Source of the DNA: Macrostomum lignano
Taxonomy: Eukaryota
NCBI GenBank assembly: GCA_002269645.1
Contig: NIVC01004507.1
Location: 1-43,680, forward strand
Direction of reading: 5' to 3'
DNA length: 43,680 nucleotides
The position numbers and the translations under genes are program-made. The stretch's first letter is position 1. Each line of letters begins with the position of its first letter. The notes under the pieces were generated by a model that was given only the letters and a program-made list of their open reading frames with translations, did no database searches and had not been told where the DNA came from. Positions 2,637-43,680 of this stretch are shown piece after piece.

Positions 2637-5116
2637 ACTAAATTTAATGAGCTAAAAATCATCGTGTACACGACAAAAACCTGTTGAGCAATTCCGATCG
2701 CAGTGCCCGCGGTTTCTAATGAGCCGGTTATAATTATCACCTTTCCAAGTTCCATAATTACCAAAAGCAAGAGTTGCTAAGAATCTGAATTACGAGGGTT
2801 GTCAGGAAAGTAGTGTTACTTTTACTTGTTGCGGACGTTTGGTCAGTTGCATTGACACAAGTTTGGTGTCGTTTGAAAGTGTCGTTTGAAAGAAAATCCG
2901 ACTGCAAAAACGATGGGGCAGACCGGCAGACTTCGTGAAACGGGAAGGCTGCACGACCGAGACGTGTGCGTGGATTGATATTAGAAGACGAAAGAACTTT
3001 ATTATTTCTTCAGTTCATCTGCACCTGTCTCTGTTTTCTCTCCCTCTCTGTCCAGTTTAGTCTTGTTATTTTCTCTCTCTCCCTCGCTGCTTTCTGATTG
3101 GCTCTCCAATCTTGCCTCTTTCCTCAGTCGCGCAATCGATCCACCCCTCATTTTCTTACTTGCACTCAACCGCCCCACCCCAAGTTTAATGTCAAGGACC
3201 ACTAGAAGTTACCGTTGTATCAAGACGTCTAGTAAAATGCTGTTTTGAAGGCAAGCATCGCTAAATAGGTGTAAACAAAAGGGCCTTCAAATAATTCTGC
3301 AATATTTACGAGTGTTACGACCTGATACAATGGTAACTTCTGAGCGTAGTGGTCCTTGGACCTTGTTTAATGTCTTATAAATTTTACTCATTTGGGCCCT
3401 GCACCCACTTACTGTTTCTTTTCAACTCAAATTAGGTGTCAGATAATTACCCTCAAAAAACGTTTTATACTGCCTCATGGCAGTCGGCGGAGGACGCACT
3501 CCTCTGGCCGAGGCGAAGCCGAGATATTTTCAGAGCAGAATAGACATCGAAGAAGCAAAGAGATAAGATTTGTTGCTCGAACCTTACTGCCAGAAAGGAT
3601 TCTGCACAAAGTAATCACTTGCGAGAAGAGCTTTTAATTTGAGGCAACCGAGCCATCAAAGAAGCTTACACAGACATGCTACTTTAAAATCGAAGTTTAC
3701 CGAGCTGGGGATTTTATGAAAAGCCACTGCATCCGAGGTTCTTATGACAATGTTCAGCCCGATACAAAAGAAACGCTTATGAAATAGAGGACCAACCACT
3801 TTAAATTTATACCCTTTTGGCCGCGCCGAATAAGTCTATGGTCCAATGTACCTCGTAACAGACGTTTATTTGTCCCGGCCAAATAAACGATCCAAATAAA
3901 TAATAAGGCAAACGAATGAGCCATAAGAAAGTACTCAAAGAAATGTACATGTACAAGTAACAGATTATAATGTTTTAGAAAAGCGAGCAGTTGTTAACCA
4001 GTTTTTTGGCTTGACAGTTAAAAGTGAGTCAACGGGTCGTAACAGATCAACTCAATCAAAGTAGACAATCACCCCGCACAACTCCACATTGACCCCCTCC
4101 CCAAGTCACAGAACTCACCAGTTGTCGTGGACATCACTACCAATCACACCTTCACACCAGAGTTTCTCTTCGGACGTCGGCTCTCATTGAATTCCTCGTC
4201 CTTCCAGAGGCTCCATGGCTTTCCGCATTGGTTGAGCAAGTAGTATTGCAGCATGCTGTAATCCTTCAACGTAGAAGCACGTAGAAGTAGAATTAGTAAG
4301 CGATCACCACGTGAATTTCGGATCTCTAAGCTAAAACACTTAAGAACGTAGTTGAGATCGTTGCTCAAACTCGGATAGTCGCTTGCGGTTGCCAATGGCA
4401 AGTCACTTAAGACAGCTTAGACTTCAGCAAGACTACTAAGTGATTCAAGGCAAATAACTCGAAAATGTCACAGAAAAGGTTTAGTAGAGATTGAGACAAC
4501 TACTCGCCTCGGCCAAGAAACTAGTCCTCTGCTTTTGCTTCAGACCAAAGAAATAAATAAACGGAAATAAGTGTCATTTAATACCTACTTGACTACAAGC
4601 CAACGCGTAATAATATCAAACGCACATGTGCCGCAAAGGTTATTCCACCCTATTCGTGGTTCTTGCCAATAGCTGGTATCATCTTGATGGACTCCCCAAA
4701 CCTTTCAATGCTGTCGAGCAGCGTCAACGAACGAGCAACGGATAAATTGGATCTCACTAGAGTTTACTACAATTTTGACGACGGGTGCATCCACCCTATG
4801 AATAAAAAAGCATTCAATATTCACTTGGTGGACGCCACTCGGCTCTTAGCCCTTCAACACCCGCGACAATTAGTCGAAAAAGCTATTTTTTTAAGAAGCC
4901 GATCTCCAATCGAAGACTTGGTCAGGAATAATAACGGAATATAGACGTCCAATGGCTATACTGCAAATGCTATCGGGGGCCGCGATTGGTTAGGGCTGAC
5001 TAAAAAAAGCAATTCTAGCTTCTAAATCTTCTAAGTAGCTACGAGCGTGGTACGGATACATTCTGAATTTTAGCGGCACAAAATTTTTGAGTAAGCTTGA
5101 CTCCAGAACCATCACA

Positions 5117-5919
5117 ATGAATCTCAAACTGCTGACTGCCGCTCTGCTCCTGCAGGCCCTCGTCATCGCCGACTGCCAGGCCAGTTCGAAGAGAAACGAG
5201 TTCCGACTCGACTCAAGCGACAGCAGCTCATCGCCAGTGAGCTTCGCTTCGCGCAAGTCGGCCAGCCGGATCCACTGCTCCGGACTGTGCTCAGCCAGGT
5301 CTGGCTGCTTTGGCATCTGCTGGCTCAGCTTGCTAGAGACTGCCGGCTCTTCACGGTGTCCGCCTTCTTCAACAGGGACTCCTGGACACTGCTCACGACC
5401 GGGCGTTGCGACATCTATGCTCGCGTGGTCCAAGGTAAGTGGAAGGTGCGAGGTCACACTGAGTTTTATGCTGTTTACCAAGCACAATAAAAAACACCTA
5501 TAATTTCAAATGCAAGCATTAGAAAGATTCTGTTCACAGACTGCACTCAAAGCAGGGTTTCATCGGACCGATTTTGCAGCCGGGATATTGATGGAGACAA
5601 GCGTCAAGAATATCTTGACGGATCTTGCAGCCACACATTTAACGAGCCATCTGAGTGGTGGGAGGGCCGGCTGTCACAGCAGTCCATGGTCGCATCCGTC
5701 ACCATCTACAACAGGCAGGACTGCTGCCCTCAACGTTTGAACGACTTCCAGCTGCTGGTTGACGGAGTTGTGTGCCACGAGGTGAACATTGAGACTCCAT
5801 TCTTGGTGAAGAACCTCAGCTGCTGGCAGCTCGGCAATCGAGTTCGAGTTCTGAATCGGCAGGTCCAGGCGTTTTCCATCTGCGAGATCGAAGCATATGG
5901 CTTCTTCTATCCTGGCTGA
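5117..5919 (+). pseudogene. PAN/apple + F-type lectin gene, copy 1 (frameshifted, splice acceptor lost)
   Basis: Near-identical to the gene at 11993-13108. It has a 1-bp deletion at ~5330 (CTCAGCTTGCT vs ATCAGCTCTGCT) and the intron acceptor reads TTTCAA at 5504-5509 instead of TTTCAG. Donor GTAAGT at 5435. Exon 2 frame is still open with IDG, SCSHT, WW and YNRQDCCPQRL motifs. Confidence 0.8.
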
Positions 5920-9103: not shown

Positions 9104-10009
9104 CTAATATTGGTTTTTGCATGCTAAGTGAGACATTTTTCAAGCAATCTGAGACTGAATAGCAAAAACACTATTGTCTATGGCCATCCCTCGCTGCAGC
9201 CCAGCTTTTTGGGCGCGCCTTGCAAGTAAAGTGAGAAATTTTTTCAAGCTAAGTGAGAACCAACCACCGTTCGTCGCACAGGCTGGCCAACTCTTGCTCG
9301 ACCCTGCGTCCTTCTCGTCCATAGGTTGTAGCCAGTCTCATCGATAAACACAGCCAGGTCATTCACAGGCAGTCCCGTCATCATCATAGCATAGTCGCGC
9401 CTCGCTTGTATCACATCCTGTGTATTCGCAGCAAGCCTCACGTCGGCATCCTTGGTGGCGACTTTCAGTGAGATAAGCATGGAGTTCATCGCTCTAGCAA
9501 TGGTGGATTCAGAGATAGCCGGCTTTTGTGGCAACTCCAAAGTCAGTTTTCTCTGCACATCCGTCAGAGTAACATAGGGATTTTGCTCAACTATCTGCTC
9601 AACGGCGTTCCGCATTTCAGCATCGATTTTTGTTGACCCCGGCTTGCGGCCACCGCGTTGCAACGCATGGAATTCACCAGTAGCTGCGTAGCGACTCCAT
9701 ATCCGATAGGCCGTCTTCTTGTTCAGATTAAGGATTTTGGACGCAGTCGAAATTGAGTAACCATCTTCGACGGCATTGACCAGGCGCTCTCTATCCTCGT
9801 TGCTTGTTAGACGCAGTTGATTTGCCATAGCCCAGCCTTTGTTTTCAATATGGTTCTCACTTAGCTTTAAAAAATTTCTCACTTTGCTTGCAAGGCGATC
9901 CCAAAAAACTGGGCTGCAGCGAGGGGTGGCCATAGACAATAGTGTTTTTGCTATTCAGTCTCAGATTGCTTGAAAAATGTCTCACTTAGCATGCAAAAAC
10001 CAATACTAG
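9104..10009 (-). mobile_element. IS630/Tc1/mariner-type element with 159-bp TIRs, internally deleted
   Basis: TIRs at 9104-9262 and 9851-10009 are near-perfect reverse complements. Transposase from ATG 9828 has two HTH-like regions and VFIDETGYNLWTRRTQGRA (first catalytic D), then runs directly into the left TIR. Confidence 0.88.
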
Positions 10010-11835: not shown

Positions 11836-11877
11836 CTGCGATTGGTCAGCCACAATCGATCCTATCGACTATTTAAG
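11836..11877 (+). promoter_or_regulatory. Candidate promoter of the intact lectin gene (inverted CCAAT box + TATA-like TATTTAA)
   Basis: GCGATTGGT around 11838-11846, also present upstream of copy 1 at ~4982-4990. TATTTAA at 11870-11876, about 120 nt before the ATG. Confidence 0.35.
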
Positions 11878-11992
11878 TCTCTTCCGAGCCTGACGAAGTA
11901 TGACGGACAGACATCTGCACAGTGGAAAGTTGTTGCTAGCAATTCTACGAGTAATTATTGCGAGACTACCAATAGCTAAAAATATTGAAAGA

Positions 11993-13108
11993 ATGAATCT
12001 CAACCTGCTGACTGCCGCTCTGCTCCTGCAGGCCCTCGTCATCGCCGACTGCCAGGCCAGTTCGAAGAGAAACGAGTTCCGACTCGACTCAAGCGACAGC
12101 AGCTCATCGCCAGTGAGCTTCGCTTCGCACAAGGCGGCCAGCCGGATCCACTGCTCCGGACTGTGCTCAGCCAGGTCTGGCTGCTTTGGCATCTGCTGGA
12201 TCAGCTCTGCTAGAGACTGCCGGCTCTTCACGGTGTCCGCCTTCTTCAACAGGGACTCCTGGACACTGCTCACGACCGGGCGTTGCGATATCTATGCTCC
12301 AGGTAAGTGGAACTTGTGGCTGGTGTCACTACGCTGGTATGAGTCTTGTGAGCACTCTACGAGTGCATATGCTGTTTATGTTGGCTACGAGTTCAACGTC
12401 GTGCTGTATGTCAGCGCCCGCCTTCTGGCCTGCTGCGCGGGAGGCGACTCAGGCTCGCTCGTCACGTCATCCCGTCGGAAAGTCGCTGCCACCAGCCGTT
12501 ACACGACCAGCTTTTGTGGACGGCAGGTTCCGCAGAGACTTTTGACGGATGCGCGAACCCCGGTCTGATTCTGACTTGGGAAGCTGACTTTTTGAGATGT
12601 GCAGCACAAATGCGTGCGTTCTAACACCTCCCCCTCTGTGGCGTATGGTGTTGTTGTTGTTGTTGTTATTAAAGCATATTAAACGCCAACAATTTCAGAT
12701 ACAAGCATTAGGAAGATTATGTTCACAGACTGCACTCAAAGCAGCACTTCATCAGGCGGCGTTTGCAGCCGGGCTATCGATGGAGACAAGCGTCAAAATT
12801 ATTTTGACGGATCTTGCAGCCACACCACCAACCACGGCTCTGAGTGGTGGGAGGGCCGGCTGTCACAGCAGTCCATGGTCGTATCCGTCACCATCTACAA
12901 CAGGCAGGACTGCTGCCCTGAACGTTTGAACGACTTCCAGCTGCTGGTTGACGGAGTTGTGTGCCACGAGGTGAACATTGTGACTCCATTCTTGGTGAAG
13001 AACCTCAGCTGCTGGCAGCTCGGCAATCGAGTTCGAGTTCTGAATCGGCAAGCCGAGGCGTTTGCCATTTGCGAGATTGAAGCATATGGCTTTTTCTATC
13101 CTGGCTGA
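11993..13108 (+). CDS. Secreted PAN/apple-like + F-type lectin (fucolectin) domain protein, 239 aa, 2 exons
   Basis: Exons 11993-12302 and 12699-13108 (GTAAGT donor, TTTCAG acceptor, phase 1, 720 nt total). Signal peptide MNLKLLTAALLLQALVIADC, a Cys-patterned PAN-like domain, then AIDG and an exact F-type lectin fucose-binding motif H-X26-R-X-D-X4-R (SH...NRQDCCPER). Confidence 0.9.
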
Positions 13109-15330: not shown

Positions 15331-16392
15331 AATCGTTGTCACGTGCTGCGACCGCTGATTCTTTACATTGTTTTTCTGTTTGACGATCCTACAGACAATG
15401 CATTGTTTGTAGTAATGGATTGTTCTGCATTAAAAATGTGAATAATGATCGTCAAATTGCTAAACAATGGCCAAAATATTTTGTTATTGCGTCTGGGTAA
15501 AAGTATAATTACAATGATGTAGCATTTATTATTTACTCTTCTGTTGATGTTTTTGATTTATTCAGCCGAACAGACAGATGATATACTTCGAGTATTGGGT
15601 TAATGCTGCGATTTTTTGCATTTCGAAAGCAGTTGGCAGCAAGTCTTCTCGATTGAAACTTCCAAGAATCTCTGAAATCAGGTAATATTTGATATTAAAA
15701 GCTTTTTTGCATTTAGATTTCTTTTTCAGTTGGAGTTGTTCTCACGGAGATTTGCAATTCATGCAAAAAGTCGCTGAAAATGGATTATCGAGATTTCGGA
15801 ATATTTATGTTTTTTTAGCACTGAATTCCCGATGTCTCTCATTTTCTGGTCTTCCGAACTACAAGCGGAACAAGTATATTTTATCCGAGGTGCACTCACA
15901 ACTTTGTCTGTGGTTAGAATGTGGGGCTTTGGACCCCCGCTAGCAGCCAAAGGAAATATCTATGGAAAAAGCCTACTAACAATCATCGCCCCTCCTTTTT
16001 GGGCAGAACTGGGAAAACTCCACGCTGGGAAGAAAAGAGACAAAAATAGACTAGAGACAAAAAATTGCTTGTTCCGTTGGTAATTTGGAAGTCGAGAAAC
16101 CGGGGGTATTGTGAGGCATAGTGCCGAAAACTTCCTATCTCAGTGATGCATCACCGTCAGCAGGCCTGTCAAAGTAGACTAAGTAGGCCTGTCAAATATA
16201 GACTACTGAGAAAAGTAGACAAATAAATATTTGAATCGTGAAATCTCTCAAATAGCCCAAAAATGTCTCCATGTAAAAGAAATGGCAGCATAAAAGAAAC
16301 GTCAGTGCACACTGCGAGTGGTGGGAGAGGACGGCGTGTGGCTGTGGTTGACTGACGAACGGAAACTGGTCTGGGTCTGTATAAAGCTTTAT

Positions 16393-19300
16393 CTATAGCT
16401 CGCATAATGTCACAGCAGTTCCCTTATGAGGACTCACAGTGCCTACAGTGCTATCCTTGAAAAGCCGGTCCCGCATCGCTCGCTGCAGTTCCGGCTCTCG
16501 TCCGATGACGCTTCTGTGTCGGTGAGCGATGCCGACCAGCCTGTCAACGTCCTGACCGAATATCAGCGCCAGATAGATCTCCTGAGGGTCGGCAGACGGA
16601 TCTTCTGCCAGCCTTGTAGTGTCCTCAATAATTGGCAGGTTGCACTGGCCCGGCAACAAAATTTTGGCCAGGTAGACAGCCAAAGCGTTGAAGTTCATGT
16701 AGAAAGCATTGATATGGTTTGACAAATGAACTGGAAAGATGTTGGAGTTGAATTCGCGCAGCACCAGTTTATCTGTGTCAATTTTATATTCGTCATCAAG
16801 CCGACAACAGAATTTAGCGATGTAGTTTTTCCTTAGCAGTTGCTGGCTCAGCTCAGTAGCAGTCCGACAGTGTTCGGGGTCCAGTCTTCCTGACGATGAC
16901 CAGTCTGGTTCGCTGCAACTGGTTAGAAAATGCAGCAGCTCCTCTCGAGCGTTGTCTCTCTGGCTGCGTCTCAACAATAACAGAACCCTCAAACAGACCT
17001 TTGCTGCGATCGCGAAGTCACCAATGGTTTCTGTCAAGGCCATGGCTTCTGCAAATTCATCGTCAGTTTTTGACGATTCGTCTGTAGAAAGTATTTCCAT
17101 GCACCTGGTTACAGCTACCGTGGCATTGTAAATGGCAGCGGAGTGGGCAGGTAAACTCTCCGATGCAGTCCCATCTTCCGGCTTGACGAGGTTCAATCGA
17201 CAAAAACTCAGTGAAAAGTGGAGAAGCGGGTTGTAGATAATCTTCTCGTCCCCGACCTGCGGTCTCAACATCAGGGCAAATTCATTTAGAACCTTGTCCA
17301 AACTGTTAATTACTTTAGTAGTCGACTCGGCAATTGAAGCCGCGCAGCTCGATTCCTTCAGGTACAGTGCTGCTTCAGGCAGAAAAAAGTGCTTCATTAG
17401 TTTGAGGTCACCCGGTTGGACGGCTTTTAATGCGCTCTCCAATTCTGTCAGAGATTTTAGTAACAACGGGCGCAGGTTTTCCTTCTGCCAACACTCCGGT
17501 GGAGTGGCATCAAGAGCCTGGAATAGCAGCGTCTTCACGTGATAAGTCTTCAGGCCGAAAGTACTCGTGGAGGTGCAGATCGCATGCTTCACGATGTATT
17601 TTAATGTAACAAAGAACCAACACTGCACAGTGTTGAGACTCTTCATGACAATGTTTTCAAGAAAAGCGGTGCTGATTCTCTTCTGTCGGCCCCTCCTACC
17701 CGGTGCAGCTGCAGAGACCACGTGACAGGACTGCGGCCGATCGATCTCGATTTTCAAGGCTTGTAGCACATTCTCGGGAAAGTACCGAGCATTGTCCAGC
17801 AGAAATATTGTCGGGTAGCAGCAGCAAATCTGCGCTGCAACCATGTCCATGGACGGTTTGAGGTGCGACGGACCGTAGTATTTAGTCGGGTTGGATGCTA
17901 AAAGACACGACGGGAAAGAAATGGAAGCCAATGGTACAGAATTACAACAAAGTTCACTGTCACAAGATGAAGGCACTCACTGACTCCTGAAATCGTCACG
18001 TGCCCATCCTCGTACGCCATCTTGCTGCTGTCCGATACTGTTGGGCAACGACAGAACGATGCAATGTGAATCGGCTCCCGAGTCTTGTCCAACAACAGTA
18101 CGTCGATGTCAGATTCCAAGTCCGTGCTGCCATCGGCACTCACAATAGAATTGCCGCATCCGTCACTGTAGCTGCCGACGAGGTGAGCTTCGAAGCCGCT
18201 CCAGTCGGCGCTGTCGGCAAACTGACAGCGCAAGATTGCCTGCTGAACTTTCGCCCTGACTTGCAGGCACTGCATTCGCTCCTGGTTGAAACCGGCTCGT
18301 TCCAAAGCCTCGACCAATACAGACACACTGCTAGGATTGAAAGCAAACAAAAGCATACAAATAAGTAACAATTTCAAACAGGTTCCGTCTTGGTCGTCTG
18401 CAGTTTGATTAGTGTTAATGCACTCAATTCTAACTGTCAGGATGGTACCAATGTCATCCAGCACTCTATTCTGACTGTCAGGACGGTACCAATGTCATCC
18501 AGCACTCCATTCTTACTGTCAGGATGGCACCAACGTCATCGAGCACTCCATTCTAACTGTCAGGATGGTACCAATGTCATCCAGCACTCCATTCTGACTG
18601 TCAGGATGGTACCAATGTCATCCAGCACTCCATTCTGACTGTCAGGATGGCTGCAACACACTCCTTCGACGCCAACGGTTGGTTAGCTAGTTCCGATAGG
18701 AATATAACACAAAATATTTGTTAAACTGAAAGATAAAGAGACAAAAATTACTTGAATCCATCGGAACACATTTCAGCCTCGGTAATTAGAGTCAGCATCT
18801 GCTCATTGTCTAGTAGCCTAACCAGTCCTTGGACCGAAAACGTTTGCGGCAAGCTCAGCAGAGCACTGACCGCCTCCTCCTTGCTGCACTGCATCAAGAG
18901 CTCCTTGCAGCATTCGATGTGGCCAAACGCGGATGCAAGGCGCAGGACCGCGCCAAGCGTCAACTTTGACGAGCGCTTAAGATACGGTAGCAGGCATTTT
19001 AGACTTTCCAAAAGTCCACTTCGCGCAGCCAGCTCGATCGGCGTCAGGTTTTCAGCGTTAGAAGCGTCAGGATTCGCTCCATGGCGGAGCAGAAGTCGGA
19101 CAATCGCTGCGTGACCTCGCATGACAGCAGTGTGCAGCGGCGTCATATTTGATTTATCGGGATGTCCGATTAAACTTGGCGAACCGAGCGCCTCCAAGAG
19201 CAGCCTGGCTGCCTCTAGGTGTCCATCTCGACAAGCCAGGTGCAGCGGCATTCTACCAAAGTCGTCTTGCCTGTCAGCCTCAGCTCTCGCCTTCAGCAGT

Positions 19301-19673
19301 CGCTGGATGACGTCAGAGTAGCCATACAGGGTGGCCACATGCAGCGGCGTGGAGCTTTTGCAGTCCGGTGAGTTTACATCGTCACCAGCTTGGATCAAGC
19401 GCTGTACAACTAAGCCGTGACCATTATAGGCGGCTAGGTGCAGTGGCCTCCAGAGATCACTCTTGCACTTTGTTATGCTGGCGCCTCGTTCAAGTAGCAG
19501 TCCGACCACAGTTTCGTGACCTCTCTCAGCTGCCAGAATCAGAGGCGTGAGTTGTCCACCTCGTCTTGCTCATTCACGTCTGCTCCGGAATCGAGAAGCT
19601 GCTCTACCTTATCAAGTCTGCCTTCTGAAGCAGCAGCGTTTAGAGGCGTCCGGAAGCAGTTTCTGTTTTCCAT
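16393..19673 (-). CDS. Ankyrin-repeat + Mab-21/cGAS-like (cGLR) nucleotidyltransferase, ~925 aa, 3 exons, one 1-nt frameshift near the 5' end
   Basis: Exons 19673-18752, 18330-17981 and 17897-16393. Intron 1 is AA|GTAATT...CCTAG|C (phase 2 on both sides); intron 2 is A|GTGAGT...TTTTAG|CA (phase 1). About 8 TPLH-type ankyrin repeats, then NTase motifs LVGSYSDG, SDID and SMDMV, then a Mab-21 C-lobe (LKTYHVKTLLF, W.KENL, KHFFLPE) and a helical tail. A 1-nt gap at ~19555 separates ANK1 from the rest of the frame. Confidence 0.8.
18421..18651. repeat. 41-bp minisatellite (~5.5 copies) in intron 1 of the ANK-cGLR gene
   Basis: Unit CTGTCAGGATGGTACCAATGTCATCCAGCACTCCATTCTGA starts at 18434, 18475, 18516, 18557, 18598 and 18639. 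Confidence 0.95.
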
Positions 19674-22284: not shown

Positions 22285-24399
22285 ATGTTTAAAAAACTGC
22301 GCCAAAAGATTGAAGAAACTGATGGAATTAAGAAGGTAAGCCAGCATATTTTAATTTTGTTATCTTTATCTGGACAATTTTTATTATCCCAACGTAATTA
22401 TCTTGATACTAAGTCATTAACTCGTCTGTATGCATGTATCATACCAAAAGGTTAGCAAAATGAGAATGATTGATTGATTGCCTACTTATTGCATTGGCTT
22501 AGACTAGGGACAAGGTCTAGGTCTATATTTTTATTTCTACTTTGATAAATTTGCCCAAAGTATGTTAAAATTATTGTTTAGCTAAAATTGTTATAGGCCT
22601 ATAATATTGTATAAAATTTTTATAAATCTAAAGATTAAATAATATATTAATAGCAATATAATTTGTAGGCCTATTTTATTATTCTACATTGATACTATCT
22701 ATTGCTATTTTTAAAAATGTTTGTTTGATCTATTGTATGCATTATAAAGCTTATTGGCCATAGTTTATTAGGCAACATATATGCCAAGATTTCCTGGTAT
22801 ATAACAAGGGTACTTATTAGCAAAACTACAGCTTATTCCAATTCTCCGTATTCCATAGCCATAGGGACCCTGAAATTACCATATTCCCATAGTTCCCATA
22901 TGGCCATAGCCATATCTGTAGTTTTAACAAAAGTCTAAAAAACGAAATATTTTGAATCAAGAAGATAACCTAGTGCTTAAACAACTGCAAATTAAATTAG
23001 AAAATAAAAGAAACGCTTGATTGCCTTTGTAAGATTATATTTCATCTTTTTTCAGAGCAACAATACTTAATCGTTACTGAAAGTACTAATGCTAAACTTT
23101 TTCTTGTAAATAAATGTTAGAGTTTGCTATTGTTTTATTGTACTTTTTTAGTTATATTTTATAAGTTTCTAGGTTGATAATACAGTTTACTAAAAGTATC
23201 TTTGTTTTACTCTACCTGTTTCTAATATTTTTTTCAATTTTTGACATTAATACTTATGGCTATGGGAATCTACGGAATGTGACAGCAACTACCATATTTC
23301 TGTAATCGTAGCTGTAAGAGCAGCTAGCTGCCGTAGACACCTATTTTACTGTATTTGCTATAGGATCCCATAGCCGTAGCTACGGCTATGGGGGAACACT
23401 AGTACTTATCATTTTTCAGCATATATTAGCATATATCCTAGATGCAGGGGCAGATTTAGGGGGGAGATAGGGAGGGGGTAGCCCCCCAAAAATAGCTTGA
23501 CCAAACATATTGTACACCCCAAAAACCTAAATTTGCACCCCTCTAAACTTGATTTTTCACTCCCCAATGCCTTTTTATGCCCCTAAAAAACCTAGGGATT
23601 TTTGTTAAGCCAAGCATTAAAAGAAGAGTTTTAAAGTTAAGGCTATAGCTTAAAAGGAGGCTTTGATATCACTATATCAAAAGGGATACTTATATCTTAT
23701 AATAAATACTAGGTTATTCAGTTCAAGGCTAATGATTTTTGTTTAAAATATTTAAAAAAAATAACAATTATGACCTATATGTAGATAAGGTTAAAAGCTA
23801 TGTTTATAGTTATCTATTGATATTAAAAAAATATTAATTTTTTGTTGCCACTTCAATAGCCAATAAAGATTTGCTAGTAACTTCTAAAAGCATTAATAAA
23901 TATCTAATTATCAAAATATAATTTCTATTTAAAAAGCTTCAGATTAGCATATTTACATAGGTACCTATTTCATAGCCATAGCAGTAATTATAGTGGACCG
24001 CTACTAAATACATAATCAAACAGGCAAGCGACTCTCTGCTAGGCAAGTACATGAGTCCAGGCTCTGGTCAGCAAGCGGAAGCTACATCACTGGGCTCCGA
24101 GTCGCCAGCTTTCTCCACAGCTTCCTCTACGCCGCATCAGCTCTCAGCAGCGGCGCCAGCAAAGTCGCGCTCTCGACAGTCTTCAATTGGTTCTGCTGTT
24201 AGTGAAACTCCTTCATCTGTTGCTGCGGCTGCTGCTGTTACTGCGGGGACTGGCGAGGCGTCAGCGACTGCGGCAGCCGCCTCGGCGCTGGAGTCTCTGA
24301 GCCGGCCGGAGCTGCTGCAGCGGTTGAGTCACGCGCAGTCGCTGGCCCGTCGTTACAAGGCTCGCCTGTTCGAAGCTGACAATCGGCTGCGCGATGTCT

Positions 24400-24440
<41 letters not shown>

Positions 24441-27400
24441 CATCTGCTGCCGAAACTGGCTGCTCGCGATCGGCTGATTGACTCACTGAAATTGCAGGTG
24501 CGAGTGTCCGACTGGCTGCTCTTGCATTGTCACTCATATAATTTGCATTGTCACTCATATAATTTGCATTGTCACTCTTATCTCACTTGCATTGTCACTC
24601 TTATCTCACTTGCATTGTCACTCTTATCCCACTTGCATTGTCACTCTTATCTGACTTGCATTGTCACTCTTATCCCACTTGCATTGTCACTCTTATCTAA
24701 CTTGCATTGTCACTCTTATCTCACTTGCATTAGCACTCTTATCTCACTTGCATTTTCACTCTCATCTGACTTGCATTGTCACTCTTATCTCACTTGCATT
24801 AGCACTCTTATCTCACTTGCATTTTCACTCTCATCTGACTTGCATTGTCACTCTTACCTGTGACAATGCTATTAGCTTTGGACGAAAACCGGCAGAAATC
24901 CCTCTGATCCCTTGCCTTTCTCCAGTCCAAACTGCTATCCGAAGGCCGTCCGGTGCCTGACGATTTGCTGGCCGGGATTGTCCAAGCTGAATCGGAAGTA
25001 GCCGAGCTGACTGAGGAGACCCCGGCCGCCGACTTGAAGCAGAAAGCATCGAACGGTGACAGCAGCTTGGCGAAGTCTGATCATCGAGATCGCGAGGAGT
25101 CTGCGGAGAAGCTGCGTATGGAAATCCAACAGCTTAGAGAGCTGCTGGATGCTAAAGCTGTGAGCTCTAATTTATTAAACCCTACTGAAGGATCCGCCCT
25201 AATTTATTAAACCCTACTGAAGGATCCACCGGGAGACCAGCGGCCTTTAAAAGAGGACCCGTAGGGAGACCAGCGGCCTTTAAAAGAGGACCCGTAGGGA
25301 GACCAGCGGCCTTTAAAAGAGGACCCGTAGGGAGACCAGCGGCCTTTAAAAGAGGACCCGTAGGGAGACCAGCGGCCTTTAAAAGAGGACCCGTAGGGAG
25401 AACAGCGGCCTTTAAAAGAGGACCCGTAGGGAGACCAGCGGCCCTTAAAAGAGGACCCGTAAGGAGACCAGCGGCTTTTAAAAGAGGACCCGTAGGGAGA
25501 CCAGCGGCCTTTAAAAGAGGACCCGTAGGGAGACCAGCGGCCCTTAAAAGAGGACCCGTAGGGAGACCAGCGGCTTTTAAAAGAGGACCCGTAGGGAGAC
25601 CAGCGGCCTTTAAAAGAGGACCCGTAGGGAGACCAGCGGCTTTTAAAAGAGGACCCGTAGGGAGACCAGCGGCCTTTAAAAGAGGACCCGTAGGGAGACC
25701 AGCGGCCTTTAAAAGAGGACCCGTAGGGAGACCAGCGGCCTTTAAAAGAGGACCCGTAGGGAGACCAGCGGCTTTTAAAAGAGGACCCGTAGGGAGACCA
25801 GCGGCCCTTAAAAGAGGACCCGTAGGGAGACCAGCGGCCTTTAAAAGAGAACCCGTAGGGAGACCAGCGGCCTTTAAAAAAGAACCCGTAGGGTGACCAG
25901 CGGCCCTTAAAAGAGGACCCGTAGGGAGACCAGCGGCCCTTAAAAAGAGGACCCGTAGGGAGACCAGCGGCCCTTAAAAAGAGGACCCGTAGGGAGACCA
26001 GCGGCCCTTAAAAGAGGACCCGTAGGGAGACCCTGCTAAATAACCTGCTAACGCATTTAAGCATCCAATATATTTCCAAAGGCCGAGCTCAACGACCTGC
26101 AAAAGCAGTTGGCCTCGCTGCGCCGAACTGCCGCCTCCCCAGCTGCCGGCAGCAGCAGCGGCAGCGACCCCGACGCCTCGGCATTGGAGGGCCGCCTGCG
26201 CGACGCCGAAGCCAAACTGGCGGCGGCTGAGCAGCGGCACCGCGACGAGAGGGCCATCGCTGCCGAGGAGGCGGCCGCCGGCAAGCGGCGGTTGAAGCAA
26301 CAACTGGCTGAGCTGCAGCAGCAGCTGCATGCGAGAGAGCGCGAGGCGGCGCTTAAGGTTTGGACTCGAGACGTAGAAAAGTCTGCGCAGTTTGATATTT
26401 CAGATGGTTTTTAGGGGCTTTAGTACCAGGGGCTTTAGTACCAGGGGCTTTAGCACCAGGGGCTTTAGCCAAGGGGCTTTAGCACGAGGGGCTTTAGCAC
26501 GAGGGGCTTTAGCCAAGGGGCTTTAGCACGAGGGGCTTTAGTACCAGGGGCTTTAGCACCAGGGGCTTTAGCCAAGGGGCTTTAGCACCAGGGGCTTTAG
26601 CCAAGGGGCTTTAGCACGAGGGGCTTTAGTACCAGGGGCTTTAGCACGAGGGGCTTTAGTACCAGGGGCTTTAGCACCAGGGGCTTTAGCCAAGGGGCTT
26701 TAGCACCAGGGGCTTTAGCCAAGGGGCTTTAGCACGAGGGGCTTTAGCACGAGGGGCTTTAGCACGAGGGGCTTTAGTACCAGGGGCTTTAGCACCAGGG
26801 GCTTTAGCCAAGGGGCTTTAGCACCAGGGGCTTTAGCCAAGGGGCTTTAGCACGAGGGGCTTTAGCCAAGGGGCTTTAGCACGAGGGGCTTTAGTACCAG
26901 GGGCTTTAGCACGAGGGGCTTTAGTACCAGGGGCTTTTTAAAATTTTTTTATTAGAGACAGGGGGGTTGTGTGCACCCTGGCGCACTTTAAGCGACATCA
27001 ACACACAAACGGCGAGAGGCATTTATTGCCCATTCCGCCGACTCCCCTGAGCAGGCACACAAGCGCGCGGATACGTACGCAGGCAGACACTCACACAGGA
27101 GTGTACAGCGGCCCTAACTTTATTTTATCGTTAGGCATGTACACTTCACTGCGCCTTGGGGGGTTGGCTCTCAAGGCCGTTAATTGCACGAGCAGAGCCA
27201 AGCCGAGATTCCAATTCAGCCCAAAATTAATGTGACTGCACTTGGAATCGAGTCTGGGTCGCTGGCACACCAGAGCCTGCGCTAGACCGCTGGGCAACGC
27301 CCCCCCTTGCACCAGGGGCTTTAGCCAAGGGGCGCCGTAGTTTTTGCCTCCTCCCTCTAGGCTACGTCCCAGATTGTTGATCCTAAATTTCGAGTTTCGC

Positions 27401-30400
27401 TTCCCCAGGACTCGACCGGGGCCACTCGCGAGTCGGAAATCCGCACCCTGAAGGAGCGTCTGGACAGTCGGCTGGCTAGCGAGAAGCGACTCCGCGAGGA
27501 GGTGAAAACGCGCAGCGCGGAGGCGACTACTCTGGCTGAGCAGCTGCGCGCCAGTCGTCAAGAGGCGGAGAGCCTGGCGTGCGAGTGCCGAGATCAGCGG
27601 CGCCAATTGGAGGCGGGGCTGTCCAGCCAGATTGAGCAGCTGGAGACGGAGCAGGCGGACAAGTTGAAAGCGGCTGCCAAAGAGTTTCAGGACCGGCTGG
27701 ACGCTAAGGAGCGCGAGTTTCAGGCCAAGTTTCAGGTTGGAGTTCTGGGATGGCCTGCGTACAATTTGGGGTGGTTGGTAGGGAGGGGTTGGTTTTCCCC
27801 TTGGCCTCCGTACAATATGGGGTGGGGTGGGGTTTCATCCGTGGCCTGCGTACAATTTGGGGTAGGTGGTGGGAGGTTCGTGTTCCTGCGTGCCGTGCGT
27901 GGCCTGCGTACAATTTGGGGTGGTTGGTGGGGAGGGGTTGGTGTTCCCGCGTGGCCTCCGTACAATATGGGGTGGGGTGGTTTTTTTTGCGTGGCCTGCG
28001 TACAATTTGGGGTGGCTGGTGGGGGGTTCGCGTTCCCGCGTGGCCTGCGTACAATAATGGGTGGGGTGGGATTTCATGCGTGGCCTGCGTACAATTTGGG
28101 GTGGTTGGTTGCGGGTTCGTGTTTCCCCCGTGGGCTGCGTACAATTTGAGGTGGGTGGTTGCGGGTTCGTGTTTCCCCCGTGGGCTGCGTACAATTTGAG
28201 GTGGGTGGTGGGTGGTTGGTGTTCCCGCGTGGCCTGCGTACAATTTGGGGTGGGTGGCAGGGGGTTGGTGTTCTCGCGTGGCTTGAGTACAATTTGGCGT
28301 GGGTGGTAGGGGGTTGGTGTTCCCGCGTGGCCTCCGTACAATTTGGGGGTGGGTGGTGGGGTTGGGGTTCCCATTTGGACTGCTTACAATTTGGGTTGGG
28401 TAGCGAGGGAGTTTTTTTCCGCGTGGCCTCGATACAATACGGGGCGGGTAGCGGGGGAATTGCTGACTTGCTTTTGCATCTTGAAAGCAGCTGGAATGCT
28501 GCTGCATCCTAATTAAGTTACAAGAGCAGCATTTGCGTCTCGAAGCATCTCAACGCAACAGAGTGGGGTAAAAAGCTACGTTTCTCCCGCCGCATGCAGC
28601 TGTGGAAATGCTGCTCTTACTGAATGTTGAACAGGAGAGGCGTAGTCCAAATGGGTAGGAATACGAGTTCAATTCCTGCAGCAACAACCTGAAACAACCA
28701 CACCAAAACGCTTAAAACTGCCACAGCTTATTAAAACATAGTATTAAATATTATATTAATTAATTTTCTCCCCCTCCTCAACCTCCGGTTCCCCAGGATG
28801 CGGTGGACCGGTTCCAGGAGGCGGAGAGCCGGGCCCGAGCCGCCCACCGGCTGGAGACTGACGAGCTGCTGCAGGGCCTGGAAGCCCGCGAGCTGGCCGA
28901 AGGCCGGCTGAGGCGCCAGCTGGAAGCGGCCGAAGCTGAGCGGGACGCCGCCCTGGCCGAGCTAAGCGCCAGCCAGTCTACCTCAGTCGAGGAAGTCGAA
29001 CGACTTCGCGCCGAACTCGCCGAAGCCGAGGCTGGCCGCTTGGCTGCGGAGTCGACTGTTGGCGAACTGCGCTCTCAGCTGGAGGCCGCCGCTGCCGCTG
29101 CCTCGACGGGGACGGCAGCTTCCGGCGCAAAAACTGGCGAAGGAGAAGTGTTGGCGGAGTCTGGAAAAGTAAGACTTGGCACAAAGTTATTTGCGCTACA
29201 TATCGGCTATTGTCTACAAAGTTATTTACGCTACATATCGTCTACTGTCTACAAAGTTATTTACGCTACATATCGTCTACTGTCTACAAAGTTATTTACG
29301 ATACATATCGGCCATTGTGTATATAAAATTATTTACGATACATATCGTCTATTGTCTACAAAGTTATTTACGATATATTTCGGCCATTGTGTATATAAAG
29401 TTATTTACGATACATATCGGCCATTGTGTATATAAAATTATTTACGATACATATCGTCTATTGTCTACAAAGTTATTTACGATACATATCGGCAATTGTA
29501 TCTATAAGTTATTTACGATACATATCGGTCATTGTGTATATAAAGTTATTTACGATACATATCGGCCATTGTGTATATCAAGTTATTTACGATACATATC
29601 GGCAATTGTATCTATAAGTTATTTACGATACATATCGGTCATTGTGTATATAAAGTTATTTACGATACATATCGCCTATTGTCTGTAAAGTTTTCTACGA
29701 TACACATAGTCTATTATAAATTCATTCAAGCTAAATATTGTCAGAAAGTAGGGCCTATTGCTTACCAAGGACCGCTAGTAGTAAAAAAAGTCTTATTCCG
29801 AAAAATGCAACAACCTTCTATGCAACATTTGCTTCGATACCAATTTATGCATTTTTACAGTGCCATTCAGACGCACTGGCTTTGCTGTGCCGAATTCAGG
29901 TACTCTTCTGATTGTATGGCGCAGTGTCTTTCCATAAATTCATGCCAACCTAACAAAACCGGTTTTGGGTGCAAATCTATGCACAGGAGGAATTGGAATC
30001 TGCGGTAAATCTTCCACTCGGAAATACGAGGACACACCCGCACCTGCTGTAGCTTTCCATTCTCACAAGCTTTTCTAAGAAAAAAACAATTCAAATTTCT
30101 CAATTCAAGGACGCTATCAAGTCTGCGTTATCGACTGAGAACAATGGCTCTCATTGGTTGCACGGCCTGGCTGGTCAAGTTGACGAACTCAGAACTGCTG
30201 CTGTGTAAGTGAAGCCGATTTTATCTATCTGAGTGCCTGTCAGTAAAGTACTTCATGCCCTACTTTTATTGCAGCGACGGCAGGCACACCGGGGACAGCG
30301 TTAGTGCTGAAGACTATGAGGCAGTCAAGATGTACGCTGCAGATCTGCAGGTGGGCATCTTGCGTTTCTTATTGCTTTAACCCATGCTATGTATTTTACC

Positions 30401-33400
30401 TGAATGGGACTGATTGATGGGGATTTGGATTGATGGGGGGAATGGGATTGATGGGGAATGAGATTGATGGGGATTGGGATTGATGGGGATTGGGATTGAT
30501 GGAGAGGATGGGATTGATGGGGGGAATGGGATTGATGGGAGAATGGGATTGATGGGGAATGGGATTGATGGGGATTGGGATTGATGGGGGAATGGGATTG
30601 ATGGGAGAATGGGATTGATGGGGAATGGGATTGATGGGGATTGGGATTGATGGGGGAATGGGATTGATGGGGGGAATGGGATTGATGGAGAGGATGGGAT
30701 TGATGGGGAATGGGATTGATGGGGGAATGGGATTGATGGGGGGAATGGGATTGATGGAGAGGATGGGATTGATGGGGAATGGGATTGATGGGGGAATGGG
30801 ATTGATGGGGAATGGGATTGATGGGGATTGGGATTGATGGGGGGAATGGGATTGATGGAGAGGATGGGATTGATGGGGAATGGGATTGATGGGTGTTATG
30901 ACTGAGGCTTTCGGAGGCTGAGGCTAAGGTTGTCGGATTTGCAGCTCGCAGCTGCCTAGTTACATGTATTTTCGCTCAGTTCTGAGCCGAGCTTTTCGAG
31001 CTCTCTTTTTTATATAACTTAACTTTTTAACGCATGCGCATAGTAGTTCAACTTAGAAAAATAAAGAGCAGCCTGTGCTCAAATTCATATCTATGGCCAA
31101 GCCATAGCAATGGGGAATGGGATTGATGGGGAATGGGATTGATGGGGAAAATGGGATTGATGGGGAAAATGGGATTGATGGGGGGAATGGGATTGATGGG
31201 GAAAATGGGATTGATGGGGGGAATGGGATTGATGGGGAAAATGGGATTGATGGGGAAAATGGGATTGATGGGGGGAATGGGATTGATGGGGAAAATGGGA
31301 TTGATGGGGGAATGGGATTGATGGGGAAAATGGGATTGATGGGGAAAATGGGATTGATGGGGGGAATGGGATTAATGGGGAATAGGATTGATGGGGGATG
31401 GGATTGATAGGGAGAATGGGATTGATGGGGGATGGGATTGATGGGGAATGGGATTGATGTGGGACTTTGATTTGAGATCGCGCTACTGCCTGCATACGGA
31501 GTCCCTCAATTACCCTCCACCGCACCCGACAGAAGCAGCTGATGAGCGTCAGCTCCGAGCTGTCCGAGCTTCGAACCCGCGGCCCCCAGCCGCCGCCCCC
31601 GCAGCCGCCAGCGCCGGTAGCCAGCAGCAGGCCCGACCGGCACAAGACCCGCGCATTCACCGACATTCCCGAGGTGGAATACCTGAGAAATGTGCTGTAC
31701 AAGTACATGCTCGGTGAGAAGACTCAGGTGAGTTTTCTTAGTTTTCATTTCTAACATAATGCTGAATTTAACTAATTTAGTAAAACAAAACATTCGCTTC
31801 CAGACCTTGGCCAGGGTGATCTGCACGGTGCTGAAGTTCACAGACTACCAAATTCAGCAGATCATGGACCACGAAGGCAAAAGGGCAGCGGTGAGTGTCG
31901 CTGAGAATTGGTTTTGTTTGGCTAGATTATCGAATCTCACTCTTCAAAGTCTCACTCTGCATGGTGTCCGATTTCAAAGTCTCACTCTGTATGGTGTCCG
32001 ATTTCAAAATCTCACTCTGTATGGTGTCCGATTTCAAAGTCTCACTCTGTATGGTGTCCGATTTCAAAATCTCACTCTATATGGTGTCTGATTTCAAAAT
32101 CTTACTCTGTATGGTGTCCGATTTCAAAGTCTCACTCTGTATGGTGTCTGATTTCAAAATCTCACTCTGTATGGTGTCTGATTTCAAAATCTCACTCCAT
32201 GTGGTGTCCGATTTCAAAATCTCTCTGTATGGTGTCCGATTTTAAAATCTCACTCTGTATGGTGTCTGATTTCAAAATCTCACTCTGTATGGTGTCCGAT
32301 TTCAAAATCTCACTCTGTATGGTGTCTGATTTCAAAATCTCACTCTGTATGGTGTCCGATTTCAAAATCTCACTCTGTATGGTGTCCGATTTCAAAATCT
32401 CACTCTGTATGGTGTCCGATTTCAAAATCTCACTCTATATGGTGTCCGATTTCAAAATCTCACTCTGTATGGTGTCTGATTTCAAAATCTCTCTGTATGG
32501 TGTCTGATTTCAAAATCTCTCTGTATGGTGTCTGATTTCAAAATCTCACTCTGTATGGTGTCCGATTTCAAAATCTCACTCTGTATGGTGTCTGATTTCA
32601 AAATCTCACTCTGTATGGTGTCCGATTTCAAAATCTCACTCTGTATGGTGTCCGATTTCAAAATCTCACTCTGTATGGTGTCTGATTTCAAAATCTCACT
32701 CTGTATGGTGTCCGATTTCAAAATCTCACTCTGTATGGTGTCCGATTTCAAAATCTCACTCTGTATGGTGTCCGATTTCAAAGTCTCACTCTGTATGGTG
32801 TCTGATTTCAAAATCTCACTCTGTATGGTGTCCGATTTCAAAATCTCACTCTGTATGGTGTCCGATTTCAAAATCTCTCTCTGTATGGTGTCCGATTTTA
32901 AAATCTCTCTCTGTATGGTGTCTGATTTCAAAATCTCACTCTGTATGGTGTCCGATTTCAAAATCTCTCTGTATGGTGTCTGATTTCAAAATCTCACTCT
33001 GTATGGTGTCTGATTTCAAAATCTCACTCTGTATGGTGTCCGATTTCAAAGTCTCACTCTGTATGGTGTCCGATTTCAAAGTCTCACTCTGTATGGTGTC
33101 CGATTTCAAAATCTCACTCTGTATGGTGTCCGATTTCAAAATCTCACTCTGTATGGTGTCTGATTTCAAAATCTCTCTGTATGGTGTCTGATTTCAAAAT
33201 CTCACTTTGTATGGTGTCTGATTTCAAAATCTCACTCTGTATGGTGTCCGATTTCAAAGTCTCACTCTGTATGGTGTCCGATTTCAAAGTCTCACTCTGT
33301 ATGGTGTCCGATTTCAAAATCTCACTCTGTATGGTGTCCGATTTCAAAATCTCACTCTGTATGGTGTCCGATTTCAAAATCTCACTCTGTATGGTGTCCG

Positions 33401-34934
33401 ATTTCAAAATCTCACTCTGTATGGTGTCCGATTTCAAAATCTCTCTGTATGGTGTCTGATTTCAAAATCTCACTCTGTATGGTGTCCGATTTCAAAATCT
33501 CACTCTGTATGGTGTCCGATTTCAAAATCTCACTCTGTATGGTGTCCGATTTCAAAATCTCACTCTGTATGGTGTCCGATTTCAAAATCTCTCTGTATGG
33601 TGTCTGATTTCAAAATCTCTCTGTATGGTGTCCGATTTCAAAATCTCACTCTGTATGGTGTCCGATTTCAAAATCTCTCTGTATGGTGTCTGATTTCAAA
33701 ATCTCACTCTGTATGGTGTCCGATTTCAAAATCTCACTCTGTATGGTGTCCGATTTCAAAGTCTCACTCTGTATGGTGTCCGATTTCAAAATCTCACTCT
33801 GCATGGGGTCTGATTTCAAAATCTCACTATGGTGTCTAATTTTAAAATCTCACTCTGTATGGTGTCTGATTTCAAAATCTCACTCTGTATGGTGTCTGAT
33901 TTCAAAATCTCACTCTGTATGGTGTCTGATTTCAAAATCTCACTCTGTATGGTGTCTGATTTCAAAATCTCACTCTGTATGGTGTCTGATTTCAAAATCT
34001 CACTCTGTATGGTGTCTGATTTCAAAATCTCACTCTGTATGGTGTCTGATTTCAAAATCTCACTCTGTATGGTGTCTGATTTCAAAATCTCACTCTGTAT
34101 GGTGTCTGATTTCAAAATCTCACTCTGTATGGTGTCTGATTTCAAAATCTCACTCTGTATGGTGTCCGATTTCAAAATCTCACCCTATATGGTGTCTAAT
34201 TTCAAAATTTCATTCTGCATGGTGTCTGATTTCAAAATCTCACTATGGGGTCTGATTTCAAAATCTCACTCTGCATGGGGTCTGATGTCAAAATCTCACT
34301 ATGGGGTCTGATTTCAAAATCTCACTCTGCATGGGGTCTGATGTCAAAATCTCACTATGGGGTCTGATTTCAAAATCTCACTCTGCATGGGGTCTGATGT
34401 CAAAATCTCACTATGGGGTCTGATTTCAAAATCTCACTCTGCATGGGGTCTGATTTCAAAATCTCACTCTGCATGGGATCTGATTTTAAAATCTCACTAT
34501 GGTGTCTAATTTTAAAATCTCACTCCATGTGGTGTCTGATTTCAAAATCTCACCTTATATGGTGTCCGATTTCAAAATATTATCTTACTACAAACTTATT
34601 AATCTCCACAATGTTTGTACTTTAGCACACATGTCTATATTCGAATGTCTTTATAAAACTTAGGCATTAAATTGAATTGACCACACTGGCACAGAGGTAT
34701 ATTTGATTCACACTCTACTTAACCCGACAGATGCATGTTCCGTGAAGGTAAACCTAGCCCAAGTCTATGTTTGCATTCAGAATAATTATTTTTTCCGGTG
34801 TTTGGGTTGCTTTTGTTATACCGAATTTGCTTGGTGATTGGTTTATTTTAACAAAAAAATATTGAATTTTACTGATATTTGATGAGCAAATTAACTACCC
34901 TTTTCAATTTCAGAATTGGCTAGTAACGCCTTGA
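22285..34934 (+). CDS. GOLGA4: GRIP-domain golgin (golgin-245/GOLGA4-like), ~735 aa, 11 exons
   Basis: Phase-compatible GT-AG exons: 22285-22335, 24024-24497, 24926-25159, 26082-26357, 27409-27735, 28797-29168, 30110-30204, 30275-30350, 31533-31727, 31804-31890, 34914-34934. N-terminus MFKKLRQKIEE resembles GOLGA4 MFKKLKQKI. Coiled-coil body. GRIP domain EYLRNVLYKYMLGEKTQTLARVICTVLKF followed by terminal NWL. Confidence 0.88.
23367..23402 (+). mobile_element. Probable Helitron 3' terminus
   Basis: Perfect 26-bp palindrome CCCATAGCCGTAGCTACGGCTATGGG (23367-23392), followed 6 nt later by CTAG|T (23399-23403), the canonical Helitron 3' signature. 5' end not identified. Confidence 0.55.
23445..23600 (+). 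mobile_element. Single MITE-like terminus (CAGGGGCAGATTTAGGGGG), possibly PIF/Harbinger-type
   Basis: Resembles AGGGGCGGAT-type MITE ends, followed by GCACCCC boxes. No matching opposite end found. Confidence 0.3.
24510..24860. repeat. 23-bp intronic minisatellite (CACTTGCATTGTCACTCTTATCT)
   Basis: Tandem array filling golgin intron 2. Confidence 0.95.
25230..26032. repeat. 33-bp intronic minisatellite (GGGAGACCAGCGGCCTTTAAAAGAGGACCCGTA)
   Basis: Tandem array filling golgin intron 3. Confidence 0.96.
26413..26936. repeat. 15-bp intronic minisatellite (GGGGCTTTAGCACCA variants)
   Basis: Tandem array in golgin intron 4, with a stray continuation at ~27308-27333. Confidence 0.96.
27745..28440. 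repeat. G-rich ~46-50-bp intronic minisatellite (GTGGCCTGCGTACAATTTGGGG core)
   Basis: Degenerate tandem array in golgin intron 5. Confidence 0.92.
29185..29700. repeat. AT-rich 35/37-bp intronic minisatellite (AAAGTTATTTACGATACATATCG core)
   Basis: Tandem array in golgin intron 6. Confidence 0.93.
30408..31460. repeat. G-rich 14-16-bp minisatellite (GGGATTGATGGGGAAT), split by a unique ~215-bp island at 30892-31108
   Basis: Two blocks of the same unit in golgin intron 8. Confidence 0.93.
31930..34575. repeat. 30-bp intronic minisatellite (GATTTCAAAATCTCACTCTGTATGGTGTCC), ~2.6 kb
   Basis: Homogeneous tandem array in the last golgin intron, with occasional 28-bp units. Confidence 0.97.
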
Positions 34935-42075: not shown

Positions 42076-42119
42076 TGTTAGGCCTGCGGGATGGACAGAT
42101 GGACAAGAGCATTGCAGGG

Positions 42120-43225: not shown

Positions 43226-43680
43226 GCAATATAGCTATACCATAGCTTTACCAATTAATACACAATACAGTTGTGAAGTAAGTCTAACACAAACAAGAAG
43301 TCGCGTGAAACCGGCATTTTTATTCTGCAGCATTCGCCCACAGGTTTATTTATTGTAGAGCAATAATTACTACCGAGCTGGCTGAAACAATTTGAAGAAA
43401 TCGAGTGACAAATGAGAGTGACTGCGAGGGCTTGAGAGAGACAGCTGGCTAACACTGCGGGGAGCTAGAATTTCAGTCTTAAAGATAGGACTACGCTATA
43501 CTGGCAAACAATAAAGCTTATTTATATTACTATTATAATAAACAATAGTGCATGCAATTTCTTTTAGGAACACAAACTAATGCGTGTATATAGTAGTAGT
43601 AGTAGTATAATGACTAAATTTAATATCAAATAATGCCGGTAGACACAACCAGAAACATTTTGTCAGATTTTAGACACACA

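Follow-up and report, generated by a model that had tools for sequence, protein, structure and literature searches.

In the 2023 survey by Li et al., cGAS-like receptors (cGLRs) are recognised by an active-site motif, by homology across both lobes and by structural homology predicted with AlphaFold2 (PMC9980059). Most cGLRs (87%) are single-domain proteins, but fusions to TPR or ankyrin repeats also occur (Fig. 1C, S2A and Table S2 of that paper); proteins of Macrostomum lignano given with Ank_2 domains in Table S2 include PAA67649.1, PAA58690.1, PAA68676.1, PAA86972.1, PAA45980.1 and PAA68216.1 (PMC9980059). For corals, the authors also described cGLRs that carry fused ankyrin repeats and death domains, which they proposed as potentially ligand-interacting (Fig. 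4C; PMC9980059). Here, we analyse the whole 43,680-bp contig NIVC01004507.1 of the M. lignano assembly Mlig_3_7 (GCA_002269645.1), referred to below as the window, which carries a four-exon minus-strand gene (GenBank BOX15_Mlig016808g2; protein PAA47279.1, 793 residues) combining N-terminal ankyrin repeats (ANK), a nucleotidyltransferase (NTase) of the cGAS/cGLR type and a helical C-terminal tail. M. lignano is a free-living flatworm in which transgenesis and RNA interference are tractable. The identity of the locus as an ANK-cGLR, in gene, family and fold, is held with high confidence; the explanation that we favour overall, namely a four-exon ANK-cGLR gene with a complete catalytic motif and a putative signalling role, is held with moderate confidence.

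All three features used by Li et al. are found in the window protein, the motif in its relaxed form. With the M. lignano ANK-cGLRs of that study it shares the species, the order ANK-NTase-helical tail and the signature GSxxxGWGNS...DGxTD..SDID; LKxYHxKT, but it is a separate paralogue with about 30% identity to them, and its ankyrin array is short, at 8 repeats, whereas many M. lignano relatives have about 16 or more. Its accession does not appear in those parts of the tables of Li et al. that were available (PMC9980059). The screen construct of PAA45980.1 has, compared by eye, an NTase equal to that of another paralogue in our set (P0035) except for one residue. The coral proteins, likened here by description only, embody the same idea of a cGLR core with a protein-interaction module in another phylum; fused cGLRs there number 3 of 42 (PMC9980059), in contrast to ankyrin repeats in 41 of the 42 long members scanned of the M. 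lignano family. The fusion architecture and the family were thus already catalogued in 2023, and the gene is a further paralogue, not a new kind of sensor. An earlier reading, made from the sequence alone, had described the gene as hidden and its product as a distinct innate-sensing architecture. Neither description holds, because the gene is annotated in two assemblies and because ANK-cGLR fusions, including those of M. lignano, are already listed (PMC9980059).

Gene structure and the two gene copies

The exons joined across introns 1 and 2 give a single continuous frame that runs from the ankyrin repeats into the NTase. The sequence-only reading had drawn these two introns from the letters (18751-18331, phase 2; 17980-17898, phase 1), and the same junctions are used in PAA47279.1; the minisatellite that it had seen in intron 1 is also present. 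At the protein level, the junctions DGF/NSVSV and ISGV/TSNPT are identical in PAA47279.1 and in the UniProt models from the older ML2 assembly. The annotation of Mlig_3_7 was built from RNA-seq data assembled under guidance of the genome (with StringTie, TACO and TBONE, the last using trans-splicing and poly(A) evidence; PMC5730564), and therefore the ANK-to-NTase junction has indirect transcript support. A split into two genes, one for ANK and one for Mab-21, that only look joinable is extremely improbable: although a TAA at 18750-18748, directly after the donor, would end the ankyrin open reading frame (ORF) in an unspliced transcript, the two parts are joined in models from two assemblies, the GenBank models being RNA-seq-based (PMC5730564), the same order recurs in 41 of 42 paralogues with long N-termini, and the alignment of P0035 with the full-length window protein covers both the ANK and the NTase parts over 855 residues (29% identity, E 7e-86). 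The claim of the sequence-only reading that both parts belong to one gene is thus borne out.

The acceptor of intron 1 is a tandem NAGNAG (tag/cag, 18331/18328; site 18328-18333), which explains the one-Ser difference between models that read FNSVSV (P0001) and FNVSV (P0005 and P0006). The sequence-only reading had ended the coding sequence at a TAG at 16393, having read through intron 3; in the annotated coding sequence, exon 3 is instead spliced at 16437 to the exon at 15671-15600, and this intron 3 is used in P0001, P0002, P0005 and P0006. Looked up as exact proteins, P0002, P0003, P0005 and P0006 gave no matching contig.

The eight-repeat ANK-NTase-C-lobe-tail architecture proposed from the sequence alone stands, but that reading had overlooked an interruption of the ORF from the ATG at 19673. 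A missing T at 19548/19549 breaks the frame 41 codons past this ATG, and the ORF (MENRNCF...) stops after 44 codons because the remaining ankyrin exon sits in another frame. As a result, the first ankyrin repeat is out of frame in the window, and the annotated model starts at the internal Met at 19251. The N-terminus is undamaged in models P0004 and P0006, the 44-residue N-terminal peptide itself matches Ank at E 2.6e-6 (the exon as a whole matches Ank/Ank_2 at E 7e-57), and the frame-corrected product has about 933 residues. Over 8.9 kb, the window shares 99.8% identity with a sister contig, NIVC01001258.1 (locus L002), and within the gene the two differ by two single-nucleotide indels, one per contig, and by zero substitutions. 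At window position 17778 (position 11897 in L002), a CCC run is one C shorter in the sister copy, and this deletion truncates the model of that copy, PAA70212.1 (Mlig016808g1), to 471 residues. In contrast, the ML2-derived model A0A1I8HI38 (P0006, 929 residues) reads through both indel sites.

Mlig_3_7 was assembled with Canu from PacBio reads and polished with Pilon, and it is highly redundant (PMC5730564). Given such an assembly, one private single-base deletion per copy and the lack of substitutions, the two lesions are probably consensus errors and not marks of pseudogenes, and the frameshift in the window is most likely an error of PacBio-based assembly. Private single-base indels of this pattern are typical of long-read consensus errors. 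The other possibility, a true pseudogene or truncated allele in which the deletion is real and only the 793-residue product from Met 19251 can be made, would be compatible with any of the other alternatives discussed below. We consider it distinctly unlikely: the deletion is present in the given sequence, lies outside any long homopolymer (CTCT to CTC) and survived Pilon polishing, and the GenBank model does begin at the internal Met, but the sister contig is otherwise identical across the gene while carrying a distinct deletion of its own, and the other assembly yields an unbroken model of 929 residues. Read as assembly errors, these single-base indels shorten both GenBank models of this gene. 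A mini-intron (GT...AG at about 19554-19519) spanning the frameshift was also considered and rejected, because it would cut an ankyrin repeat which runs through without a break in the sister copies.

Fold, active site and family of the encoded protein

Pfam profiles identify both ends of the architecture, with Ank_2 at 190 bits and Ank at 121 bits, above the Pfam thresholds (about 8 repeats by inspection of P0006), and Mab-21_C (PF20266) at 32.0-32.8 bits against a cut-off of 24.1; 17 of 19 paralogues also match Mab-21_C. For the structural comparison, an AlphaFold2 model of the NTase plus tail was built on an alignment of 19 paralogues (pLDDT 85.6, pTM 0.87). In a Foldseek search against the PDB, all 50 of the 50 matches listed are cGAS or oyster Cv-cGLR1 (probability 1.00, E about 1e-6, 350-415 aligned columns, target-normalised TM 0.49-0.62, 12-15% identity), so that the check proposed by the sequence-only reading returned, among the matches listed, cGAS/cGLR structures only. 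In line with the model, the family profile matches cGLR1 (8gjy) at E 5.6e-6 and cGAS at E 1e-5 among PDB sequences, with a weak match to MAB21L1 (5eog, E 0.06). Aligned by hhalign to canonical proteins carrying PF03281 and PF20266, the family profile spans both lobes (99.9%, E 1.2e-33, 304 columns, query 5-325), with the GS and SDxD of the two sides in register and the third Asp opposite the D of the D-x-V-x-A...C..WP strand. In the predicted secondary structure, GS follows the strand at 47-52, DID lies on the strand at 75-82 and the third Asp on the strand at 133-142, which in the model is the placement expected of a Pol-beta-type NTase. The protein is thus predicted to have the cGAS/cGLR (Mab-21-type) fold.

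The catalytic residues named in the sequence-only reading are intact, and its coordinates for GS, SDID and the third Asp are correct. In its relaxed form, the cGLR motif defined by Li et al. (G[S/G], [DE]h[DE]h, X50-90, h[DE]h; the strict form begins h[QT]GS; PMC9980059) occurs once in the protein, as GS-x20-DIDV-x55-MDM, and aligns with the canonical Mab-21 motif. Across 19 paralogues that are about 30% identical overall, the key residues are 90-100% conserved (G53 in 19/19, S54, D75 and D77 in 18/19 each, D135 in 17/19). Between the DxD and third-Asp strands lies a His-x4-Cys-x-Cys-x14-His cluster (H89, C94, C96 and H111 in core numbering), conserved in 15-18 of the 19 paralogues, which may be a candidate zinc site in the N-lobe; we take it to sit elsewhere in the fold than the zinc thumb of cGAS.

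The fold and motif also bear on the chemistry. An active NTase making other products, such as OAS-like linear 2'-5' oligonucleotides, or adding nucleotides to RNA or protein, would be consistent with the GSxxxGxGN...SDhD spacing, which resembles classical Pol-beta-type NTases, and with weak matches to an MTPAP-like palm domain (E 0.03) in 2 of 19 paralogues, and the product is not readable from sequence. However, none of the 50 structural matches listed is an OAS or a poly(A) polymerase, all being cGAS/cGLR, and the profile matches Mab-21 proteins across both lobes (E 1e-33), which makes such chemistry quite improbable.

Compared with cGAS and characterised cGLRs (human cGAS, Cv-cGLR1 8gjw and cGLR1 8gjy), the window protein shares the bilobed NTase with its helix bundle, the GS loop and the acidic triad. 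However, it is only 12-15% identical to them, is unmatched by PF03281, and adds the N-terminal ankyrin array and a C-terminal tail of 270 residues. With this low identity, a core isoelectric point (pI) of 7.2 and nearest relatives that are paralogues of the same species, the protein falls, as judged by these comparisons, outside vertebrate cGAS proper. With MAB21L1 and MAB21L2 it shares the superfamily fold, but the acidic triad is conserved in the window family, whereas the Mab21L1/2/3 genes are described as developmental and as lacking a predicted functional active site (Fig. 1A legend; PMC9980059).

An exhaustive HMMER search over 1.84 billion representative proteins gave 279 matches, with 72 clusters at E<1e-30. 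This search was needed to see the family, because word-indexed homologue searches, with the single protein or with the 19-sequence alignment, returned only three M. lignano proteins. The ANK-NTase-tail family comprises at least 72 clusters at 50% identity; all sampled clusters with a source name are from M. lignano, and most sampled clusters are labelled ANK_REP_REGION. In the 42 long members scanned, ankyrin repeats lie N-terminal to the NTase in all but one and Mab-21_C is matched in 31, and the match to the family profile usually spans NTase, helix bundle and tail in one stretch. ANK-NTase-tail is therefore the standard architecture of the family. The N-terminal extension ranges from about 240 to more than 900 residues, with lengths clustering near 300 and 560. 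The NTase is the most conserved part (mean pairwise identity 41%; ANK 28%, tail 29%), and a conserved catalytic module beside a variable repeat module is what might be expected of an expanded receptor family. Our searches thus place the locus, as a paralogue, in a large ANK-cGLR family that they recovered from M. lignano only. The model P0007 carries two NTase-tail units in tandem, and P0029 is 3379 residues long.

The nearest relatives without an M. lignano name are canonical invertebrate Mab-21/cGLR proteins (outgroup set A5), some with C-terminal TPR, which are the weakest matches of the exhaustive search. Ten of ten scanned match PF03281 and PF20266, but ankyrin repeats are absent from all ten, and where these proteins align to the family profile, the match ends short of the tail region. 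The tail of about 270 residues appears, from these profile matches, to be confined to the M. lignano family, where it is conserved with the consensus elements FHPF, LPD.A..AR, DSAWKF and Y.NF.AL. Predicted on its own, it gives a confident AlphaFold2 model (pLDDT 77.9); its PDB matches, GPCRs mixed with TPR-like proteins (best E 0.29, probability at most 0.23), were treated as no match.

Putative signalling role

As a plausible mechanism, the three Asp residues would bind two metal ions, allowing the NTase to join nucleoside triphosphates into a cyclic or short oligonucleotide second messenger, with the GS activation loop gating activity. The variable ankyrin solenoid might then act as a ligand-binding or autoinhibitory module that holds the enzyme off until a partner binds, and the nucleotide product could act on a downstream receptor, STING or another. 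The calculated pI of the NTase core is near neutral at 7.2 (6.0 for the whole protein), in contrast to the values above 8.5 of nucleic-acid-sensing cGLRs (PMC9980059), which weakly favours a protein or another non-nucleic-acid ligand. Whether the protein is a putative active, ligand-gated synthase of a second messenger we regard as evenly balanced. Literature searches found no functional characterisation of any ANK-cGLR, and searches on STING in M. lignano found nothing.

Several points weigh against an active receptor. Table S3 of Li et al. lists five M. lignano enzymes (numbers 89-93) cloned for their screen, all of which carry the family signature, and none of these paralogues is among the 15 characterised active enzymes, all of insect, anemone, mollusc, hydra or coral origin, with 0 from flatworms (PMC9980059). 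Most Platyhelminthes encode no cGLR besides Mab21-like proteins, and in those entries of Table S5 that were available, where M. lignano does not appear, the flatworms (tapeworms) have 0 cGLR and 0 STING (PMC9980059). The sequence-only reading had proposed Ank and the Mab-21 profile PF03281 for a HMMER check; Ank and Mab-21_C matched, but the N-lobe profile PF03281 did not, neither in this protein at E<=1 nor in any of the 19 family NTase-plus-tail sequences at E<=0.1, and it is for this reason that homology of the N-lobe had to be sought by comparing profiles and structures. The motif departs from its strict form, h[QT]GS, only in having Val, not Gln or Thr, before GS (LVGS). In addition, the frameshift could be real in this copy, and the role given to the ankyrin solenoid is purely conjectural.

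The absence of the five paralogues from the characterised active enzymes (PMC9980059), the divergence of the N-lobe from PF03281 and the departure from the strict motif would also suit a catalytically silent Mab-21-fold scaffold. Such a protein, like MAB21L1 or MiD51, would act through partner binding and make no second messenger; MiD51 binds nucleotide without turnover. However, although the 19 paralogues have an overall identity of only about 30%, 17-19 of them retain GS, both DxD Asp residues and the third Asp, which would not be expected were catalysis dispensable, and we consider a silent scaffold unlikely. Moreover, the screened constructs began at the NTase, without the ankyrin repeats, and were offered double-stranded DNA and poly I:C only (PMC9980059). 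The published result therefore leaves room for activity of the full-length proteins, and an ANK-cGLR with a complete catalytic motif and a putative signalling role remains the explanation that we favour.

A more specific proposal is that the M. lignano ANK-cGLRs, this gene among them, are lineage-specific expanded receptors, with a variable ankyrin array that would bind ligands other than nucleic acids, such as proteins, a fold-orphan tail that would govern activation or oligomerisation, and a nucleotide product that would act on a receptor other than canonical STING; we put it forward as a speculative possibility of low probability. If true, cGLR signalling would persist, through an expanded receptor family, in a phylum otherwise considered to have lost it. 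With at least 70 ANK-cGLR paralogue clusters, where most flatworm species have none, M. lignano is a usable system for studying repeat-domain-gated cGLR sensing.

Feature coordinates and neighbouring sequence

The features of the gene and of its surroundings are collected in Table 1. Within exon 3, the Mab-21_C match lies at 17604-17362 and the NTase core ends at about 17260; the helical tail then occupies 17259-16438 and continues at 15671-15600.

Table 1 Positions in the window of the ANK-cGLR gene, its functional elements and other features
Feature	Position	Strand	Description
Coding exon 1	18752..19673	-	ATG 19673-19671; about 8 ankyrin repeats 19673-18853; 33-residue linker 18852-18752; from translation and Pfam
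Frameshift site	19548..19549	-	window AACTC-ACGCC vs AACTCTACGCC (D-N-S-T-P-L) in the sister contig; base-by-base comparison
Intron 1	18331..18751	-	421 nt, phase 2, GTAATT...CCTAG
Minisatellite in intron 1	18420..18650		41 bp x 5.6 copies; Tandem Repeats Finder, 92% matches, score 399
Coding exon 2	17981..18330	-	first half of the NTase N-lobe: spine helix, GS, SDID strand, His/Cys cluster
GS	18176-18171	-	activation loop, from sequence position
SDID (DxD strand)	18113-18102	-	D 18110-18108 and D 18104-18102
His/Cys cluster (candidate zinc site)	18068-18000	-	H 18068-18066, C 18053-18051, C 18047-18045, H 18002-18000
Intron 2	17898..17980	-	83 nt, phase 1, GTGAGT...TTTTAG; same junction in P0001, P0002, P0005, P0006
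Coding exon 3	16438..17897	-	third catalytic Asp, remaining N-lobe, Mab-21_C helix bundle, most of the helical tail
Third catalytic Asp (MDM)	17847-17845	-	in exon 3
Intron 3	15672..16437	-	766 nt, phase 0, GTGAGT...TTTCAG
Coding exon 4	15600..15671	-	23 codons, RFLEVSIEKTCCQLLSKCKKSQH, stop TAA 15602-15600
Polyadenylation signal AATAAA	15557..15562	-	38 nt 3' of the stop codon; read from sequence
Transposase ORF (probable Tc1/mariner-like fragment)	9244-9939	-	HTH_32, HTH_28 and IS630-type transposase N-terminal domains
F5/8 type C (galactose-binding-like) exon	12719-13108	+	domain match
GRIP-domain (golgin-like) coiled-coil gene	~22800-30800	+	Pfam GRIP match on the sister contig annotation
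EHBP1-like gene	38513-42075	-	NT-C2 (E 6e-13) and start of bMERB (E 9e-7)

The neighbourhood of the gene is ordinary eukaryotic sequence with many minisatellites. The repeat-rich parts of the GRIP-domain gene are 87-97% identical between the sister contigs, against the 99.8% of the flanking 8.9 kb, and the EHBP1-like gene is interrupted by proline-rich and other minisatellite arrays. From its domain matches, the transposase ORF is probably a fragment of a Tc1/mariner-like transposon. The ORFs at 4990-5503 and 11869-12568 have long identical peptide stretches in common, and part of the region is therefore duplicated within the window. Long tandem-repeat arrays occupy 1-3000, 30000-32000, 32480-34310 and 41000-43250, where GC skew is strong (as high as 0.5) and both strands carry repetitive pseudo-ORFs; these arrays fit the reported content of 15% simple and tandem repeats in the M. 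lignano genome.

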